Positions 1 through 15,065 of a stretch of DNA of 64,000 nucleotides are shown here, piece by piece. Origin of the DNA: Blastocystis sp. Blastoise (Eukaryota > Protista > Bigyra: Opalinata); the NCBI GenBank assembly GCA_039096225.1, contig JBBPEB010000013.1:372001-436000 (forward strand), written 5' to 3'. Position 1 is the stretch's first letter; each line of letters begins with the position of its first letter. Under the pieces are notes generated by a model. That model did not search any database. It worked only from the letters and a program-made list of their open reading frames with translations, and was not told the origin of the DNA. Position numbers and translations under genes: made by a program.

Positions 1-443
1 TTTGCAACAGTAGCAGAATCAGGATTTCTGAATTGTGTATTTACATTACTTTGATTACTAGAGTTCGTTGTTTCTGTATATTGATTAGTATTAATGTCAT
101 AATTAGAAGATATATTTGTATGAGGATTTGTATTAGAAGGATATGAATCAACATATTGATTTGATGCACTAGTATCTGGATATAAGTTTTGTCCATTATT
201 TGTATACGCATTTCCCTGTGAAGTTTGATAAGAGTTATCAGCATCATTTGAAATTGCAGAAGGATAATTAGCGTCAGTATAATTTGTATCACCATTATGT
301 GCAAAATTAGCATTGGGATCATTTTGTATACCCATTTTATCGTCATTATTTACTCCATTAGTTTCTTCTGGATAAGAGTTCCAGTCAGGATATCGTTGAC
401 CGTCTCCAACTTGAGGATCTTGATTAGGATTCATCTCAGTCAT
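1..443 (-). CDS. 5' part of an unknown protein with an N/D/S/T-rich low-complexity N-terminus; runs off the window
   Basis: ATG at 443 (MTEMNPNQDPQVGDGQRYPDWNSYPEE...) stays open to base 1 with A/T-ending codons. This is a different frame from the track ORFs here. Confidence 0.75.
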   Translation of the reverse strand, partial: MTEMNPNQDPQVGDGQRYPDWNSYPEETNGVNNDDKMGIQNDPNANFAHNGDTNYTDANYPSAISNDADNSYQTSQGNAYTNNGQNLYPDTSASNQYVDSYPSNTNPHTNISSNYDINTNQYTETTNSSNQSNVNTQFRNPDSATVA

Positions 444-695
444 GTCTTACAAATAGTTAACAAACACAAAATATATATACCAAAATTATGTTTAGTGTAA
501 TTCAAAGTCAAACAAGGACCAAATAATTTATTTCTTTCTTAATAGGATAAAAGTCTTTTATAGAATATCCAATAGTATATTATATTTTATTTTTAACGAT
601 ATTTAATTGGATTCTTTTCATAAAAAAAAACCATTTCAAGAATAAATGAAAAAATTTGTTCTTCTTCTTGAGATATTCACGATTATTTAAAAATA

Positions 696-746
696 GAGAT
701 AAATCAGCCTATACAGTAGAATTGTTAAAAAGTCAGACAATACAGT
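696..746 (+). repeat. Left terminal inverted repeat of the MULE
   Basis: GAGATAAATCAGCCTATACAGTAGAATTGTTAAAAAGTCAGACAATACAGT is the exact reverse complement of 12944-12994. It starts GAGATAA like maize Mu and has ATACAGT twice, 29 bp apart. Confidence 0.97.
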
Positions 747-905
747 CGTTTCCAGAGGGTCCTATGACCCGCGGTATTTTTAACATAATGGCGACTAGAA
801 TATAATACAAATATGTTGTAAAATTCCCAGTCAAGAAACTATATGTGTTTTCTACTAATAATTAATTTTTGCCATATTCGACCTATTTGTTTAAATTTGA
901 CTTAA

Positions 906-3900
906 ATGGATAGACGGGATATTGACAGAATAGATAAGGAAGTGGAAAATGAGGATTTTACTCAATATGTTCAACACATTCCTTCCGTCATACAAGTATT
1001 TTACACATATATAAATATTTTAATATCTAGAGACGTCCTGATAAGGATTCAAGAGTGAATCCGTTAACAAAAACAACTTTTAGCATGTTTAAAAACATTG
1101 ACCAAAATCAGATTGCCTCTTTGATTGAAGAAAACAGTTTTAATGGGTTTTTCAGAGATTATACAAACTACCTATGCATTATCTATAGGAATTTTCTAAT
1201 ATCGTTACTTTTCAACATTCGCCCTGAATTTGGGTCAAGAGAAGAGATTGAGGTTTTTTTAAGATTATCTGCATATAGTAATGGCTATTCTATGATGATT
1301 CAAAGAAGTTCAAAACAATATGTCAAATACAAATGTCCCATCATGGAATGCAATTACATAATTCAATACAACTTTAAAGATGGAAAATATCACTTAACAC
1401 ACTTCCATCAACATGATACAGATGTATAAATATATATAATTACAATATTTATTATATTTTACATTAAAATAATATTTTCTATATATACTATCAATTCTCT
1501 TATTAATAAAAACTATATTTTTATATATTAACTATTTTATTTATTTAGAAATGTTCGAAATTTACTTCTCACTATATAGAACTTATGAAGGAAAATAGAA
1601 TAAAACAATCTGTTTGTGACTATTATCAAAAACAAATTAATATAACAACTAATAATATACCTATTAATAATGATAATAAAGAAATACCTAATAATAATAA
1701 TGAACAAGATAGAAATACTATTATAGATATAGCTGGTCTTCAACTATTAGAAAAGGAATTAGTTTCTAATCAAATTAAAGAAAATAATAATCATGAAGTG
1801 AATATTGATGAATCATTACAATATGAAGAAAGAATAGATGATACTCCTTTAACTGAAATAGAAACTGAAATAATTCAGAAAAAAGATCTTATACTTGAGA
1901 AAAGAGTTTATATGAGTTCTGAAATGGATTTATTATTATATGAGATGCAAAAAAATAATGAAAAAAGAATAAATAATCAAACATTCCCTGATATGTATAT
2001 AGATGATATATTAGAAGAAGAAGAAGAAGAAGAAGTAATAGAAAAAGAAAAAGAAAATGATTATGAAAATGAGAAAGAAAATGAGGAAGAAAGTGATATT
2101 GATATAAACAATAATAGTCAAGATGATGAAGTATTAATGAATGGGTTTAAAGACAAGGTTAATAATATAACAACTCCTGTACGATCTGTTTCATTGGAAT
2201 ACTTTGAGAATGTTATTAGTCAAAGTAAAGATAAACCTAATATTAGTTATATTAATACAAACTTTAGATTATTATTTAGAAGTCCATTAAATAGTACATT
2301 TGTATATAATTATTTATTATGTCATGAAAAATATAAAGGAATGATATCTAAAGATATTATTAATGAACTACATTCATTGTTTCCTTCAATTAATCGACAT
2401 ATAATATATTGTTCTACAACGAGGTTTCTTCTAAATGATGATATATCATATTCTTATATACCTCTGATAATAAAACAGCTCAATACTAGTAATTCAAATA
2501 ATAGAGCCTTTTATATGTTATATAATGGAAAAACAGTCAATAATAAAATTGATTTTAATACTGTTGATTATACTGATGATATTATAGATGAAAATAATAA
2601 TAATAAATCATTATTATGTTGTTGTACCTTAATTGGTGAAAATATTAAATTATTAAATTATTCTCCTCCTGTTATTTTCCTAGATGGAACGTTTATGGGT
2701 CTTGGAAGTACTGTTACTTTAGTTATAACAGGTAATATATATATATTATTATTACTATTTCTATTACTATTACTATTACTATTACTATTACTATTATTAT
2801 TACTATTACTATTACTATTACTATTACTATTACTATTACTATTACTATTACTATTACTATTACTATTATTATTACTATTACTATTACTATTACTATTACT
2901 ATTACTATTACTATTACTATTACTATTACTATTACTCTTTATAGCTGTTAATATCAATCATGAATCCATATGTCTTGGTTTTGGATTCTTTCCATCTGAA
3001 AGTGAAGAAGCTTGGGTTACTTTATTATCTTCATTAAAGAAGGTTTTAATGAGTCAATATGGTAATCAAACATTTACTATTGTTTCTGACCAAGCTAAGG
3101 GGATCAAGTCGGCAGTTCAAAAGGTATTTCCTGACTATCCCCATATTCTCTGTTTCTTCCATTTATTACAAGATCATCTTCGAGTCGACTTACGTACAAA
3201 ACAATATATTATAGATAGTTATAAAGCTTCTACTTTTGAAGAAGCAAAAGAAAAAGCAGAAAAGATTATAGATGAAGATCTTAGATGTCAAGTTCTTGAA
3301 GTTTGGGAAAAGAATAATAAAAGTTTACAAAAGTATGATTCAATTTGTAAATGGTATATTTCCTCAAGTGTAGCTGAAAGCTACAATAGAGTATTAAAAC
3401 GTTTTAGAAATATTCCTATTCATAAAATGTTTCTATGTATCTATAACTATAGTATTACAAAACAGATTAATATAAAAACTAGTATTCCTATTGATAATGT
3501 TTTCTTACCTTGTTTTGATAATATATATAATAGAATCAAGAATAAGAAGTATTATATAAAAGAAAAGAAAGATGGAGTTTCTGCTGTTGTAAATGATGGT
3601 GTTAGCTATATAGTAAATTTAGAAAAGCAAACATGTGAATGTAAGGAATACCAAAACAAACACACTCCCTGTAAACATGCTATAATCTTCCTTCGGTACT
3701 TAATAGAAAAGGGAAATAATAATACTGATATTATTCCACGAGTATTAAGAAATGTGAATAATCAAATTTATAGAAATCAATATCAAAACTATGATGGAGA
3801 GTATATATTTATATGTATATAATGATATATATAGTATATAGATAGTATATAGATAGTATATAGATAGTATATATATATTATATGGATAGAATATAGATAG

Positions 3901-5994
3901 TATATAGATAGTATATATAGTATATGTAGTATATATATATATACTATATAGATAGTATATATAGTATAGATAGTATATAGATAATAGTAGAATAGTATAA
4001 ATATATATCCTATAGATTCTATATACTTTCTATATTCTATCTATATTCTATCTATATAATATCTATATTCTATCTATATTCTATCTATATACTATCTATA
4101 TTCTATCTATATAATATCTATATAGTATATATATACTATATATATACTATCTATATACTATCTATATACTATCTATATTCTATCTATATAATATCTATAT
4201 AATATCTATATACTATCTATATTCTATCTATATAATATCTATATTCTATCTATATACTATCTATATACTATCTATATTCTATCTATATTCTGCTATCTAC
4301 TATCTATATACTATCTATATACTATCTATATTCTATCTATATAATATCTATATATTATCTATATTCTATCTATATAATATCTAAATTCTATCTATATACT
4401 ATCTATATTCTATCCATATAATATCTATATAGTATATATATACTATCTATATACTATCTATCTACTATCTATCTACTATCTATATTCTATCCATATAATA
4501 TCTATCTACTATCTATATATTATCTATATAATATCTATATTCTATCTATATGTATACTATATTCTATCTATATATTATCTATATACTATCTATATACTAT
4601 CTATATACTATCTATATACTATCTATATACTATCTATATATTACCTATATACTATCTATATACTATCTATATTCTATCCATATACTATCTATGTTTTATC
4701 TATATATACTATCTATATACTATCTATATACTATCTATATTCTATCTATCTACTATCTATATACTATCCATATGTATACTATATACTATCTATATATTAT
4801 CTTTATATTATCTATATACTATCCATATACTATCTATATACTATCTATATATTACCTATATACTACCTATATACTATCTATATACTATCTATATTCTATC
4901 TATATACTATCTATATACTATCTATCTACTATCTATATACTATCTATATACTATCTATCTACTATCTATATACTATCTATATACTATCTATCTACTATCT
5001 ATATACTATCTATCTACTATCTATATTCTATCTATATAATATCTATCTACTATCTATCTACTATCTATATTCTATCTATATTTTATTTATATACTATCTA
5101 TATACTATCTATATACTATCTATATGTATACTATATACTATCCATATACTATCTATATATTATCTATATACTATCTATACATTACCTATATTCTATCTAT
5201 ATACTATCTATATATTATCTATATACTATCTATATACTATCTATATTCTATCTATATACTATCTATATACTATCTATATATTATCTATATTCTATCTATA
5301 TAATATCTATCTACTATCTATCTACTATCTATATTCTATCTATATTTTATTTATATACTATCTATATACTATCTATATACTATCTATATGTATACTATAT
5401 ACTATCTATATACTATCTATATATTATCTATATACTATCTATACATTACCTATATTCTATCTATATACTATCTATATTCTATCTCTATACTATCTATATA
5501 CTATCTATATATTATCTATATTCTATCTATATTTTATCTATATACTATCTATATACTATCTATATATTATTCATATACTATCTATATACTATCTATATAA
5601 TATCTCTATAATATTTATATTCTATCTATATACTATCTATATTCTATCTATATACTATCTATATTCTATCTCTATACCATCTATATACTATCTATATATT
5701 ATAATTCTTAATAGTATTCTATTTCTATAAATAAATAAATCAATATATATTCTTATTATAATTATTAAAAAAATATATATGATATATACTTTATATAGGT
5801 TGATTCCATCTACTATACTTGATGAAATACCAAAAGTTCAAATATTGAAACCAGCTTATGCAATGAAGAAAAGAGGGAAACCAGTTGTAAATAGAAGAAA
5901 GAGAAAGGCTGAGACCAATATGGAGAAGAAGAGAAAGAGAATCCCTTATGTGAAGAGAAGTATCCCATTTGAAGACAGAATCGATCTTTTATAA
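906..5994 (+). CDS. MULE (MuDR-type) DDE transposase, ~905 aa, 5 exons: 906-995, 1031-1423, 1549-2731, 2945-3800, 5799-5994
   Basis: GT-AG joins keep frame (2718 nt in total). WRKY-GCM1-like finger CPIMEC..HQH; catalytic motifs IFLDGTF, IVSDQAKG, CFFH, VAESYN; SWIM CECKEYQNKHTPCKH; basic KKRGKP tail. Confidence 0.93.
3829..5700. repeat. 11-bp minisatellite (TATACTATCTA)n filling transposase intron 4, with an inverted block at its 5' end
   Basis: ~3829-3995 reads (TAGATAGTATA)n and ~4020-5700 reads (TATACTATCTA)n. Confidence 0.9.
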
Positions 5995-6184
5995 TCATAT
6001 TATACTAAATAATCATCATATATAATTATATCTTTATTTATTAATATACAATTTATTCTTTATATGATTAATATCCTTATTTATCTATCATCTATATATA
6101 TACTAATATAAATAAATATTTTATATCTATCTACATATATATATATACATTATTTATATCTTCTTTTTATAATACTCATTGTTT

Positions 6185-6192
6185 TGTTTGTT
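6185..6192 (+). terminator. TGTTTGTT Blastocystis-type polyadenylation motif for the transposase mRNA
   Basis: Lies ~190 nt after the stop. The same motif follows WDR12 (~15146), TMA7 (~15885), VPS4 (~18839), CENP-O (~29840) and Myb (~43213). Confidence 0.55.
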
Positions 6193-7976
6193 TATACTGT
6201 ATCAATATCATCTATATATCTATAATCAATATAAATACAATTTAAATATAAAATAGTATATACAATATAGTTAAAAACAATATAAATACATAAGTATAAT
6301 ATATAATATATATTATATATACTCAAAATATATATTCATTTATATCATCATTAAGAAACATTGAATAATTAAAAGACATATATCAAAACTTCATTATGAG
6401 GCCTTTTCGAAGTAAAACACATTACATAATCACCTTTACACATACACAATTAATGGAATCATTCTATAAAAATGTATTAGATTCAGAATAGTATTGATAT
6501 ATTTACATATATATAATGATATACAATAGTATAATATAGATAATAATGAACTAAGATTAAGATAAGATACAAATTATATGATTATATATAAATACCTTTA
6601 TTCCTCTATTATATTGATCATTTTGTATTAGTAGCACAGTTTAATCATCATTGAAACAGAGAAAACCATCTTTCGAAGACCTTTTCTTTTGAAATCAATT
6701 GAAGATTACCATAAAGACTATCCTAAAGACTACAACCAGTGTTTGAATAAGTGTTTCTAATCAGTTTAATGAAGGAATGTTCAATCCAGAATAAGTAAAA
6801 CACCCGCCACTTAATCATTGCTTCAATAACACTTTGTTTTGATTTAATAAGTAAGTTGATTAGATTTCTACATTGAATCGCAATACCAACTTTGAAAATA
6901 AGTAAGTCTATACTTTAATCCATTGGCAATGGTGACTTTGACCTACTCTAATACACTTATAATAGCTTTATAAATGCTTATGCATGCTTCAAACATGCAA
7001 ATAACAAAATATTTATATTTTTATACCATTTCCCTAACTTTACTTAAAAAAACATTAGTAAATTTTGATTAAATGTTATTTATCTATTCAAAATACCTTT
7101 ATTAATTATTATTAATTATTTGTTACTTATTTACTGCTCTCTAAGCTATGTATTGATCGTTACGCTACTTTTTATATCAAAACTAGGTGGTTTAATGGAT
7201 TGATGTTATGTTCATATTTGATTTTATTGTAAATTATGTTATGAATGGTATTCTTAGCTCAAATAATCTTCACACAGATGATAGATGTTCTATATTATGA
7301 AGGTGATATTTTTGTCAATTATCTTATTTTATGAAATTACAAGCTTTATCTGTTGATCAACTGATCAGTAATACTGAATGAAGCTCAAAAATATGTAGTA
7401 ATCTCTTTTTAGGCATGTAATTAGTAGTTTTTAAAATTCGTCGTGAGAGAAGAAGCTAATTCTATTTATTTTTGAAGTTATGAGTAGCAAAACCTATTTG
7501 AATGTTATACAGTGAACGATTAGAATCCTATTTTGAATTTAATGGTGATGATCAGTATTATAGACCTTATAAAAGCAATAGAAACTAAATCACAAAGGTT
7601 AAAATTGGATATAAATATGTTTTAGATTTGAATTAACTACCTTAATTCATTTTAAGTTAATATTCTTAAATGCATGTCCAGTTGATTCACTTTAAGAAGT
7701 CTATTCAGAATCTTAATGTTTTATTGATGCTTAGAATTGTATATAATGATGAATCAATGAAATATAGTTTATATAGAAAATAATTGATGCATCTAATTAG
7801 CAATGTGTTGTGTGTTGGGAAAAGCAAAATAAAAACATTATAGGAGAGCGACTGACCATATACATAGTTGATTAAATATCTCAATGTACTATATATCTGT
7901 ATAATGGAAGAGTAAACGAATATAATATATATAAATAAAAATATTTAAAAATATTTAAAAAAATAACAATAAATGA

Positions 7977-8044
7977 CATTAGATCAGGAATTGAACCTGA
8001 TAGCAATTCAATAATAATTGCTACTGACCATAAACAGTCTAAGG
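7977..8044 (-). ncRNA. Non-canonical tRNA-like cloverleaf RNA inside the MULE, probably Pol III
   Basis: Minus strand reads CCTTAGA CTG-TTTATGGT-CAG TAGCAATT-ATTATTG-AATTGCTA TCAGG-TTCAATT-CCTGA TCTAATG. Perfect B box GGTTCAATTCC; T7 run 13 nt downstream. Confidence 0.7.
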
Positions 8045-8099
8045 AGTGTTAAAACTATTGATATAATCAATAAAAACAAAATCTTAAAGAAAAACATAT

Positions 8100-11000
8100 A
8101 AACAATATATAAATTTTTATGTATATAACTATTAGTATAATAGTTTTCACATAATTTATACTATATTGTTAATGAATATCCATAATGATTTCTTATATTT
8201 GTAGAACAAGTGGAGTAAACACTAAATAAATAAATATTTTATAGCGAAATAAAATAGAAAATATGTACAGTCGTATAAATAGTATAAAAGATGTAGACAA
8301 TAAAGATTATAAATAATTTATATAGAATAATAAAAGCGTATAAAGATATAAATAAAGGACAGAGAGAATAAATAAGCATTAATATAAGTATATATTAGAT
8401 ATAATGAATAAAATAATAAAATATAATTGTACAAAAATTATATATGTATAGATCTATATACATATTTTAATTGTAGATGTTTTCTAATAAATGAAGACTA
8501 TATATACTGTGTATATAATATAAAAAGATAATAAGTTACAAATAGTTAAAAATGATGGACTATAGAGAATATTGAAGATAATATACATATAGATATGATA
8601 TATATTAGTATATATAAGTATATATATATTAATATAAACTTATATACTAGTATATATATAAGTATATATACAAGTACATATTAACATATAATTATCTTTA
8701 TATATAAGTATTTATATATATATACTTATATATATATACTAAAAATCTTCTTATAAAGAGTAATATAGGATGATAAGGAGATTGATCACCAACAGTTGAA
8801 AAAAGATCAAGTACTGTATTCATGATTAGAAGCATATAAAAGGATATATATATATATGAATTCTCTATAAAAGATATATAATAGTATAAGAAGGAAAGGG
8901 ATATAAAATATGAGTATACTAAAGAATTAAATTTATATATATATACAGATAAGGAATGATAGATGCATATGATATACTAGAATTCAGAAGAGACTATATA
9001 CTAAAACAACTATAGTATATATATTATATTTAATGAAATAATAATATAATTGGAGATAGAAAAAGAAAAACAGTTTAAAGAAATTAAATATATAAAATAT
9101 CAAATAGTGTAGAAAACTATATATATATATTTATATACATAAAGAAATCTCATATGCATTAGTAGAAATATAATTTGCAGAAACCTATATAAAAGAATAT
9201 ACACGAATAGGATAAGTTATATATAAAACAATAGAATAAGTATATAATATATAATACTATTTACTCATAGAGCAACATAAACCTATATATATATATAATA
9301 AGTATAACGAATAATATAATGAAAATATAAAGTATTATAGACTTCAACGAAACTTTTATGCCATTGAAACCAGGAAGATATATAAAAGGCTATCGACTTA
9401 TTACTATATATATAGAATAGAATTAAATATATATAAACATATATTACTTATAAAGTTATGAAATACAAAACAGTAAAAAAGATATCTATAAATATATTGT
9501 ACTAAATCTAGAAACCAAAATGATTTATAAAGAAAAAGAACGAAGGAAATATATATCATATATATATCATATATATATCAGTAATTGTATATAATATAAA
9601 AAGAAGTCATATAAGAAACAAGAGTTAATAACGTATAAAAATAGATTCGATGACTTAAAACAATATATATATATATAATAATAATAATTATTATTATATA
9701 TATATATACTTTTATTTATTGAGTTATACAAGTCATATATATTATAAGTACGCTATCTTATTGATCTATATACATCTTACACAATATATGCATAATGGAG
9801 AAGGTTAATCATGGACACGTATAACTATATATATAATAAGCATTATATATTATATATATAATAAGCATTATATATAATATATTTAATAAGTGTATTATAT
9901 AATAAGTATATATATAGTCTTATATATAATAAGTATAATATATAATAATAAGTATATGTATATAATAAGTATATGTATATAATAAACAAATTATATAATA
10001 AGAAAATAATATAATAAGCATATTTATAATGACTATATATATAATAAGCATTAATAAACAATATAAATAATATTTATATACATGGCAAATATATAGACAT
10101 ATTTGTAAAAAACCATATATAGAGGAATGTAAACGAAGAAAAGCTAATAATATCTATATAATAATATATATAATAATAACTATATAATAACTATATATAA
10201 TAATAACTATATAATAATATATATAATAATAACTATATAATAATATATATAATAATAACTATATAAAATATATATAATAATAACTATATAAAATATATAT
10301 AATAATAACTATATATAATAAATATATATAATAATAACTATATATAACAACTATATATAATAATAACTATATAACAACTATATATAATAAATACATATAA
10401 CAAATACATATATTAATATATAACAACTATATATAATAAATATATATAACAACTATATATAATAACAACTATATATAATAAATCTAATAACAACTATATA
10501 TAATAACAGCTATATATAATAACAACTATATATAATAATAAATATACATAAAAATATACATATAACAACTATATATAATAACAGTTATATATAATAACAG
10601 CTATATATAATAACAGCTATATATAATAACAACTATATATATAAATATATAATAACAGTTATACATAATAAATCTAATAACAACTATATATAATGAATAT
10701 ATAATAACAACTATATATAATAACAGTTATATATAATAATAACTATATATATAAATATATAATAACAACTTTATATAATAACAACTATATATAATAATAA
10801 ATATATAATTATACAACGAATATACAAAACATATGTAATAATAACTATATATATTAAATATATATATATATCAACATATATATTTACATAAAAGCTATGT
10901 ACATAACAAGTCTATAGTATAAATACCAATTATATACGATACTACATACTTTTAAGATACCCAACAAAAATAATAATAACACCATAAATAATATACCTAT

Positions 11001-12889
11001 AAAAAATAAATATAGTATATATAAAACATAAAAATATGCATACATATATATATATAGTAAATAATGATAATAAATATATACAAGTTGAACATATTTACAT
11101 CAAGAAAAGCAAAATAATTTTATGAATCCAACAGGTAATAAAGTATATCCTAAAATATGAGTATATTTGACTATTTGTAATAAAAAGTCTATATATATAT
11201 ATATCGATTATTAAATAAATACAAGTTATAGAGTTATATATATACTATAAGAAAAGTATAAAAAATTGAATATAAAACAAGATAAATAGATAGAATAATA
11301 TACATACATAATATAATATTATGAATGAACAAGCTAGAAGATAACTTTATTAATAATAGAGATAGAACGAGCACATCCTATATACAACAAGACTAGTATA
11401 TATATTATGTAATAAAAATTATATATAACATCATAAAAAGTATATAGGAATATATATATATATATATATAAACTATATACATCAATATAAAGTTGAAAGA
11501 TACACAGTCTCAATAATTCTAGAATATGACATTACTATATATATAAATGATAATAAATATACTAAAAATATTCATATATAAATAGTAATTAATTCATATA
11601 AATTGTCTGAAATAGAAAGTATAATAAGAAAATATATAATATCTATATAATAATATAATATATCATGCATATTTATTTAAAACAAGAATTAGTACATAGA
11701 ATAATATTAATATATAGCATATACAATCATTATAGGATCAATATACATAAAAGAACATATATAATATTATATATATATACAATTATTTTCCCCTGATAGA
11801 AAGAAATAACAAAAATTCATCATTCTATATATATACAATAAATATATAAGTATACATATATATATATAATATATACACATATATCTAAATACACAATATA
11901 TATAAATATACAATATATATAAATATACAATATATATAAATATAATACATACTTCAAATAAACATATAAATGAATTCATTCGATCATTAATACACTTTTT
12001 CTATATATAATAGTAATTAACAATATAATAAAATAATAATATATAGAATAACAATATACATAATAAAACATATATAAATATTATATGTAGTATTAATAAC
12101 AATAATAGACCAGGAAAATATGTTGAAATAATAATTCTATAATATATATATCAAATAATAAGCATATATAACAACAATAAGAATAAATAAATGACAAAAG
12201 AATCATAATATACCTTTTTACTAAAATTTTTATTATTTTTATTTTGAATATATAATCATCCATAACTCTCCAATAACATCAGTTAATCATATAATAATTC
12301 ACATAATAGTACTATACATCATCTAGGACTAAACGATAGTGTTAAATATTAAAAACAATAATAACTCCTGAACATCAATTAACTGCCATTTCTATACAAC
12401 TAGAGAAGATATATTGATAATAATGTTATTATATACTAGTCATACCATAATGGGATTGAACAAGACAAAACAAACCTCTAGATAACTCCACATTCTGTAA
12501 TTGTAATTCTCCATCAATATTTCTTTAATATGGTTTCCTATATACTATTTAGATATAATACATACTTATATAATAATATACATCAATAATATAACCCAAA
12601 GACTATTTTTGACAGCCAAATGTCGACCATTATGATAAAAGTCTAATATGACTTGCTTATTCATCTAACCACTTCAACATAACTATATAAGTTTACATAA
12701 GCAATATCAGACCTATATAAGCATACCTAATTGGCAATCCCCAATTACTTTCACGAACCTCACCTAAATCTACTCTATATATGTCATCATATGTATAATA
12801 AGGCATAATATATATACATACTCAATATTCAATCCATATATATATATATAATACCCCTAGCAGTTATTTAAAATATAAGTTATCCCCAT
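8100..12889 (-). other. Putative second, multi-exon transcription unit of the MULE (lncRNA or decayed gene), convergent with the transposase
   Basis: Regular GTAT...TATAG intron-like segments (12775-12854, 12683-12726, 12538-12581, 12392-12436 and more) alternate with less repetitive exon-like blocks. Sense strand is T-rich as in host genes. No intact ORF could be assembled. Confidence 0.45.
10150..10800. repeat. ~14-bp minisatellite (TATATAATAACAAC)n-like in MULE cargo
   Basis: Tandem variants of ACTATATATAATAA(C/T)A. Confidence 0.85.
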
Positions 12890-12943
12890 AATTATTTTAT
12901 ACACCTAGTCATACTCGGAGACGTTGGGATACTCCCATACCCT

Positions 12944-12994
12944 ACTGTATTGTCTGACTTTTTAACAATTCTACTGTATAGGCTGATTTATCTC
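12944..12994 (-). repeat. Right terminal inverted repeat of the MULE
   Basis: 51/51 match to the left TIR, followed directly by the TSD copy. Confidence 0.97.
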
Positions 12995-13078
12995 TTTAAA
13001 AATATGTCGTTTTTATGGTTTTTCTTTATATAATAGACAATTCATTGATTCTTTGTATATACGGAATAGATATTGATA

Positions 13079-15065
13079 ATGGATGTAGAAAATGAGCCTC
13101 AAGTATATTTCGTTGATATATCTCAAATTATTTCCACTTTAAAATATACTTGTTTTTTAGATTCGTGTCAAATTTGTCACAAAATTTGATAAATATCGTG
13201 TACCTGAAACTCCTATAGCTGTTCCACTTCGTTTTTCTCGTTATGGTTTATCTGAAGTTGTTAATCATCTTCTTGATTTAGCTACTCCTCAACCTTTTGA
13301 TTTTTTGATCAATGGAAAGTTTCTGAGAATTGTTTTATCTCAGTTTTTAGCAGAAAATGATCTTTCTTCTGAAAATGTGTTGAGTTTAGAATATATTCCT
13401 ATTATCAGTAAACCTGAAGAAAAATCAAGTGATTCTTTTCCTGATTGGATTAGTTCTATTAGTGTTCGAGATAACTATTATACTGTTGGTAGTTATGATG
13501 GATCTCTTACTCTTTTTAATAACAATGATGAACAATTATCTAAAGTTCGTCTTCATAAATTACCAATTAAATCCATTGCTTCCTGTGTGATCAATAATGT
13601 ATATATTTATATTGTTAATATTTTTGTTTTCGAGTATTTTTTAAATTTATATTATTATTATGTTTATTATATGTTTATTATATGTTTATTATTATTATGT
13701 TTATTATTATTATGTTTATTATTATGTTTATTATTATTATGTTTATTATTATGTTTTATTATATATTTATAGACTTTAGTTGGTATAACTGGATCTATTG
13801 ATAATCGTATAAAAATAGTAAAAGCTGAATTGAATGCAGAAAAACCATCTTTTAGTGTAGTCAATACTCTTGTAGGTCATAATGCTTCTCTTTCTACTGT
13901 TAGTATTAGTCCCAATAAGAAATTCTTTGCTTCTGGTGCTTGGAATGGTAGTTTGAATGTTTGGAATATAGAAACACAATTAAACGGAACAGATAAAGAA
14001 AAAGAAGTATATATATAGAGTTGTTTTTTTTTTTATATAGCATTTTATTTTAGTTATTATATACATTATTTATGTTTCCTAATTTCCTCTATATATGTAT
14101 ATATATATCTATAGAATCCTTTGAATACATTTACAGGTCATAATGAGAATATTTCATGTATATCTTGGATTGATAATAAATCCTTCTTATCTTCCTGTTG
14201 GGACCATACTATTCGTTCTTGGGATATGGAAACAGAAGGAGTTATTAATACTTATGTATATATAATTATATATAAAGATATTCCTATTATCCTATTATAG
14301 ATTATTGTTATAAATATATATGTAATCGTTTATATATATAAATTACAATAGGTAGTTATTTCATGTGTTTTTTTTTTGTTATAGTTAACCAATAAAGTAG
14401 TCACCTGTGTCCGTTACAATCCTCTTAACAGTCTTTTCATATCAGGTCATCCTGATGGTATTATCCGTCTTTTTGATAGTCGTGCTTCTAGTATATTATT
14501 CTATTTATTATTCTTATTTTATTTATTTTATTTATTATTTTTATTTTATTTATTATTTTATTTATTTTATTAAATTATAAAATATTTATATTAAATTATA
14601 AACTATTTATGAATACTATTATTCCCTTCATCATTTTATTCTTATAATTCCTTTCAATTCTAACATCTATATAAATATACCTATCTTCTCTACTATAACC
14701 TATAGATGGTACAATTATGAAGATGGCATTTAGTCAAAGTGGCTCTTGGACTACTAGTTTAGCTTGGAAACCAGATTCTGAATATATATTTGTATCAGGT
14801 TCTCAAGATCATAAAATACGTCTATGGGATATTCGTTCTTCTTATCCTACTTATATCTTAGATACCATACATACAGATAAAATATTTGATGTTCAATGGA
14901 AAGATAATAATACTATTCTTAGTGGTATCTATTTTGTCTATTAAATCTATCTTTTATATATATATACTATTTTATTTTTCATATAACATAATTATATAAA
15001 TATATACTTATACTCTATTTATAGGAGGTGCTGATAAGGAATTAAAGAGATCTGTTATTGCTTAA
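13079..15065 (+). CDS. WDR12: Ribosome biogenesis protein WDR12/Ytm1 (NLE domain + WD40), 7 exons
   Basis: RYGLSEVVNHLL..FDFLINGKFLR..ENVLSLEY, then DWISSI and WD repeats (GHNASLS, SGSQDHKIRLWDIRS, SGGADKEL). Stop at 15063-15065. Confidence 0.92.

Follow-up and report, generated by a model that had tools for sequence, protein, structure and literature searches.

The DNA analysed here (the window) is a 64,000-nt stretch of the genome of Blastocystis sp. Blastoise, a tortoise-gut Blastocystis (contig JBBPEB010000013.1, positions 372,001 to 436,000). It holds a Mutator-like element (MULE) of 12,299 bp (696–12994), and the large non-coding cargo of this element contains, on the minus strand, a linker-less tRNA mimic of 68 nt (7977–8044). 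Judged from its covariation, the mimic is a non-decoding tRNA look-alike whose fold is kept by selection. Its relatives sit in transposons of several superfamilies (MULE, CACTA and Helitron), among which it would form a portable processing or terminator cassette. Our preferred reading, to which we assign a probability of about one half, is that the mimic serves as a processing and termination signal in a non-coding transcript of RNA polymerase II (Pol II), as suggested by the anatomy of the element and the covariation of the fold. The mimic aside, the MULE proper is ordinary.

The mimic comprises a 7-bp acceptor stem, a 3–4-bp D stem with GG in its loop, an 8-bp anticodon-like stem and a 5-bp T stem closed by a TTCAATT loop. 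In an alignment of seven rows, three of which belong to one family so that the counts may be inflated by relatedness, 96.4% of the cells were paired and 11 of the 24 pairs showed two-sided (compensatory) changes, distributed over all four stems. None of 500 shuffles scored as high, slid controls reached 34–46%, and RNAalifold recovered the same cloverleaf. The GG of the D loop and the T loop are invariant; in the T stem, too, the sequence is conserved, and only one of its five pairs covaries. The second acceptor pair is C-U in the window copy and C-G in another full-length copy of the element (C14b). The conserved portions correspond to the tRNA elbow and to the 12-bp helix formed by acceptor and T stems. 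Elbow and acceptor–T helix are the features that tRNA-processing nucleases read. The B box is invariant; no A box exists in four variants, and the positions where it would lie covary freely.

The first-pass annotation had described a tRNA-like gene in the cargo. The cloverleaf is real and covaries, but a canonical tRNA gene it is not: ARAGORN and Rfam missed it at default settings, the linkers (U8/A9) are lacking, and the anticodon-like stem has 8 bp instead of 5 bp. The anticodon-like loop, read from the 34–36-nt matches of a core-pattern search of the genome, varies in sequence and in length (5–7 nt), which makes decoding unlikely. We therefore rejected a decoding or suppressor tRNA, for which relaxed ARAGORN settings return, from one variant to another, Ile, Lys or 'Stop'.

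The core-pattern search yielded at least 185 mimic matches and no control match. A covariance model gave at least 150 matches, with all of the matches listed scoring at least 80 bits. Relatives are found in a nested CACTA element (one), in a nested Helitron (two) and at a Helitron end on contig C15. In a MULE family with about 31% transposase identity (family E), the mimic lies in sense orientation 12,094–12,100 bp from the core in all seven copies; this family and family F were assessed by coordinates and scores. Another MULE family, a distant one (C10 and its derivatives), is about 70% alike in the first 170–320 nt downstream of the mimic, a similarity suggestive of an exchanged cassette or of strong constraint. 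Some other MULE families have no nearby mimic among the matches listed, and the mimic is accordingly not universal in MULEs. The core pattern was not found in metagenome, viral or prokaryotic contig collections. On contig C28, a broken MULE has beside it a decayed mimic (L050:3624-3695) that has lost 5 nt of its T stem.

A tRNA-derived short interspersed element (SINE) that became a passive passenger of many transposons by inserting into them, the remaining cargo being neutral filler, would also produce many copies in which a tRNA-like head precedes a unique body, and it would account for the homology between some families, which begins sharply at the 5′ end of the mimic and runs on downstream. 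The copies are, however, family-specific and sit at fixed offsets, as seen in family E, which suggests that the mimic spread together with its host element. Moreover, the window copy has no poly(A) tail, its best flanking direct repeat is an 11-nt AT word, an A box is missing, the bodies of the MULE, CACTA and Helitron copies are mutually unrelated, and the stems appear to be under selection. Such an origin is hence very improbable.

Upstream of the mimic on the minus strand, the stretch from the right terminal inverted repeat (TIR) to the mimic (8045–12943) is U-rich and bears splice-like signals. No credible open reading frame (ORF) was found in it, and it may represent a non-coding transcript. 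The T fraction of the minus strand is 0.49 in the 2 kb ahead of the mimic, and the minus-strand T skew of the cargo (+0.18 to +0.19) resembles that of a host sense strand. Acceptor-like sites number 22 on the minus and 10 on the plus strand by a crude test, which failed to identify the correct strand of two known genes. Splicing of this putative unit is plausible. A convergent spliced unit had been proposed before and is partly supported: strand skew and acceptor-like sites agree with it, but the unit has no ORF and the acceptor test is crude. Predicted short spliced exons and a pyrimidine tract (76–82% Y) end at the mimic, on its strand, within the CACTA insert and likewise within the second Helitron copy; in the window MULE as well as the Helitron insert the mimic is aimed at the 3′ end of a convergent gene. 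For the CACTA element, a crude splice-site test hinted at a gene on the minus strand ahead of the mimic; this was rejected, as the region has plus-strand exons and many minus-strand stops.

The conservation of the nuclease-read features, the linker-less build resembling mascRNA, the missing A box and the predicted exons ending at the mimic together favour a processing and termination signal. The gene order places the transposase next to the left TIR, from which it would be expressed, and the fixed cargo would constitute a non-coding unit facing it. A Pol II transcript might start at the right TIR or leak in from the flank and cross the U-rich 4.9 kb up to the mimic. There, host RNase P would cut at the 5′ end and RNase Z at the 3′ end, as with mascRNA. 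By this cleavage the upstream RNA would gain a poly(A)-independent end and the downstream RNA would be left uncapped, so that the polymerase could terminate in a non-coding block of 1.3–1.8 kb and would not transcribe much of the transposase in antisense. With antisense RNA stopped about 1.8 kb short of the transposase 3′ end, less double-stranded RNA would be formed. Since an Argonaute is present in the genome, antisense RNA would probably be costly for the element.

The block downstream of the mimic (6200–7976, minus strand) is non-coding. A non-coding block follows the mimic in all five contexts examined, with 1.3–1.5 kb in four of them and about 0.5 kb examined on C15. In a second explanation, the mimic is a small gene of RNA polymerase III (Pol III) or stands at the head of a transcript, and the product acts in trans, either as a decoy for factors of RNA silencing or tRNA sensing or as a leader whose removal by RNase Z frees the RNA downstream. 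Adenovirus VA RNA and the gammaherpesvirus TMERs are models for such trans-acting RNAs. The invariant B box, the sequence-conserved T stem, the homology starting at the mimic and extending downstream, the Helitron copies with nearly no upstream room, a run of seven T about 14 nt downstream of the window mimic, the number of copies (at least 185) and the presence of Argonaute are all in line with this explanation. On the other hand, there is no A box and its position covaries freely, T runs are ubiquitous at 20% GC, and the predicted spliced, pyrimidine-rich units stop exactly at other copies of the mimic. A phased small-RNA array downstream of the mimic was considered and rejected, as neither a 20–30-nt periodicity nor strong or conserved hairpins were present. 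Overall, we regard a trans-acting Pol III or leader RNA as possible but rather doubtful.

The downstream block also shows features at the DNA level. About 60 substitutions among the copies are clustered there beyond chance, without a single alignment gap; the region 6000–8060 contains no indels compared with 24 in the non-minisatellite blocks further right, a contrast that is confounded by TA microsatellites. A mild 10-bp periodicity rises above the background of the host in 10 of the 26 downstream windows of 200 nt (10% expected), although it is uneven and one Helitron copy does not show it. Together with the invariant B box, the lack of indels and the periodicity would fit a chromatin barrier, in which TFIIIC bound to the B box and a nucleosome-positioning block shield the transposase promoter or the host neighbours from silencing and the fold is left over from a tRNA ancestor. 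Yet a DNA site needs no compensatory changes in the acceptor, D and anticodon stems, and we consider a barrier of this kind unlikely.

Several observations weigh against a processing and termination signal. The covariation rests on the seven rows described above, and one acceptor pair is broken in the window copy itself. In two Helitron copies only about 215 nt of the element lie upstream of the mimic, and accordingly no long transcript of their own ends there. The mimic of MULE families E and F has the sense orientation relative to the transposase, and guarding against antisense transcription is thus not a general role. An A-rich tract for a triple helix of the MALAT1 type was not seen by inspection just upstream of 8044, where the sequence is U-rich. 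A candidate minus-strand intron in the downstream block (6595–6464), which is also the site of a 4-kb insertion in copy C14a of the element, suggests that the polymerase continues for at least 1.5 kb past the mimic. Finally, as downstream sequence is common to families, the downstream RNA could itself be the product.

From the cargo, the first-pass annotation had proposed that the element runs its own RNA-based regulatory module. The covariation of the cloverleaf supports the RNA part of this idea; the module is not an invention of this element, being common to MULE, CACTA and Helitron transposons, and the non-decoding mimic is not a tRNA gene. Tentatively, and with more doubt than confidence, we suggest that the selected cassette of the three superfamilies might recruit the tRNA-processing nucleases of the host, by which transposon RNA would be made or cut, as a counter-silencing device, acting as an antisense firewall or by releasing a decoy RNA. 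If this is true, it would be an RNA-only counterpart of protein anti-silencing factors. The window element offers a good test case, as it is intact and recent, exists in five copies with a natural pair of acceptor variants (C-U and C-G), and has a clear convergent layout.

The anatomy of the element agreed with the first-pass annotation in most respects. The 51-bp TIRs (696–746, plus strand; 12944–12994, minus strand) form a perfect inverted pair, and the target-site duplication (TSD) is exactly 10 bp (686–695 and 12995–13004). Minisatellites, an uninterrupted five-exon transposase and a recent, autonomous element had likewise been claimed, and each of these claims held; the minisatellites have units of 11 bp (4018–5702) and 16 bp (10145–10870). 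A TIR search of the genome found 11 ends, namely those of five complete elements plus a solitary right end. The left TIR is identical in all five copies, and the TSDs (10, 10, 9, 12 and 10 bp) all differ. The complete cargo is present in each of the five full-length copies, and a lack of it in other copies, which would have contradicted the first-pass annotation, was thus not observed. Because of its presence at different sites with distinct TSDs, both an assembly artefact and a one-off capture were rejected.

The window copy (C16) and copy C19 are 99.97% identical, differing by two substitutions and two one-base gaps over 12.3 kb. Two one-base insertions in C19 shift the transposase frame and may be assembly errors. 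The frames of C16, C18 and C14b are intact (905–907 amino acids), while that of C14a is open only once a CACTA insertion is removed. These sequences support an element that would be autonomous and recently mobile, the near-identity of copies speaking to recency only. Between copies the transposase part diverges by at most 0.5% and the cargo by up to 2–5%, and exons 1–4 of C16 and C18 differ by seven synonymous and six non-synonymous changes. The mosaic pattern of divergence among the copies suggests recombination between them. Substitutions between copies occur in clusters of 10–25 nt (6821–6831, 7591–7614, 7663–7678 and 12688–12712), some of which resemble length-compensated indels; micro-inversions as their source were tested and not borne out.

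Copy C14a (G000:C14:124437-155243) extends over 30.8 kb due to three nested elements and contains four tRNA mimics in total. The inserts are a CACTA element of 8.8 kb with a 3-bp TSD in transposase exon 1, a Helitron of 6.4 kb with a hairpin plus CTAG end in intron 4, and the hairpin-ended 4-kb element inside the cargo. The Helitron and the 4-kb insert contain non-coding blocks with a degenerate repeat unit of 243–247 bp and an approximately fivefold excess of GTCAA/TTGAC. On contig C15, the solitary right end of the window MULE family, which is 126 bp long, adjoins an element of 13.9 kb (G000:C15:87822-101890) that has perfect 51-bp TIRs of its own. The mimic-bearing Helitron end on the same contig is adjoined by an intron-less cluster (G000:C15:76001-86000) that resembles an integrated Polinton-like virus; by impression of their motifs, one of its ORFs (1031 aa) is primase/helicase-like and another is tyrosine-recombinase-like.

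The transposase gene (906–5994, plus strand) consists of exons 906–995, 1031–1423, 1549–2731, 2945–3800 and 5799–5994, which are separated by GT..AG introns and join to a stop-free frame of 905 amino acids. All motifs of the DDE type are present (FLDGTF, VSDQAKG and AESYN), as are the CxxH motif (CFFH) and the SWIM finger. Pfam matched MULE (E=6e-15), SWIM (E=1.4e-5) and Transposase_mut, exon 4 being the matching region, and exon 2 gave a weak match of the AFT type, which has the WRKY-GCM1 fold. A protein search with one ORF as query retrieved three proteins, each of which is annotated in Blastocystis sp. Blastoise (relative WA158_004538). Intron 3 (2732–2944) is a stop-free 6-bp repeat of 213 nt; left unspliced, exons 3 and 4 form a 745-aa ORF with a poly-Leu insert. 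Intron 4 (3801–5798) is filled by the 11-bp minisatellite and differs in length among copies. The minisatellite flips its orientation (3825–4014 versus 4020–5700), and this could give rise to a long, imperfect double-stranded fold-back in the transposase pre-mRNA. The motif TGTTTGTT at 6185–6192 (plus strand), which we take to be the polyadenylation-site signal of Blastocystis, likely marks the 3′ end of the transposase mRNA.

We also rejected a concealed protein gene or a recoded ORF: in the cargo blocks tested, each of the six frames contains all three stops, and there is no 3-periodicity. Fragments of host genes were not found in the cargo by the searches run, one of which scored 40 of 5397 candidates. 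Within 443–13079, the element is inserted into an intergenic stretch of about 330 bp flanked by two divergent genes, the right-hand one presumably resembling YTM1/WDR12; its Pfam beta-propeller matches are weak.

By its sequence features, the window element is a member of the MULE superfamily and shares with autonomous elements of the Mutator/MuDR type the TIRs, TSDs of 9–12 bp and a DDE transposase with CxxH and SWIM motifs; it differs from other autonomous MULEs by its length of 12.3 kb combined with short TIRs of 51 bp. Maize MuDR has a second, convergent unit that starts from the other TIR (mudrA/mudrB). The putative unit of the window element is similarly placed but is ORF-less and ends at the tRNA mimic, and a second protein-coding gene of the MuDR type was not found, as the tested blocks of the cargo show neither a credible ORF nor codon periodicity. 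A large internal cargo between transposon ends is also known from Pack-MULEs and gene-capturing Helitrons and CACTAs. The intact transposase makes the window element autonomous and excludes a Pack-MULE, and its cargo holds one structured RNA that appears to be under selection across superfamilies. Like the mimic, tRNA-derived SINEs, TMERs and VA RNA begin with a tRNA-like portion that includes a B box and continue into unique sequence. The mimic itself lacks an A box, a TSD and a tail, moves with its host transposon and resides in DNA transposons, not in a viral or retroelement setting.

To our knowledge, processing of long nuclear RNAs by tRNA mimics is known mainly from two vertebrate genes. 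In the literature searched, no title or abstract reported tRNA mimics in DNA transposons, and MULEs and tRNA are unmentioned in the genome paper (Lind et al. 2025, PMC12129017). The mascRNA and menRNA of MALAT1 and NEAT1 are linker-less RNAs with GG in the D loop that RNase P and RNase Z cleave (PMC11693755). Their build is close to that of the mimic in the 7-bp acceptor, the T stem-loop, the small D arm with two conserved G, the longer anticodon-equivalent stem, the absence of linkers and the non-decoding character (PMC11693755). The mimic, with its 68 nt, its 8-bp stem and its presumed cleavage, had no mascRNA/menRNA match in Rfam at E≤10 and no triple-helix tract; on these sequence grounds it is mascRNA-like in build and not a member of the mascRNA family. 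In contrast to the vertebrate RNAs, it is carried by the DNA transposons of a protist, where it numbers at least 185 copies. An unrelated, covarying mimic in the MULE, CACTA and Helitron elements of such an organism would represent an independent origin of this type of structure and a new strategy of DNA transposons.

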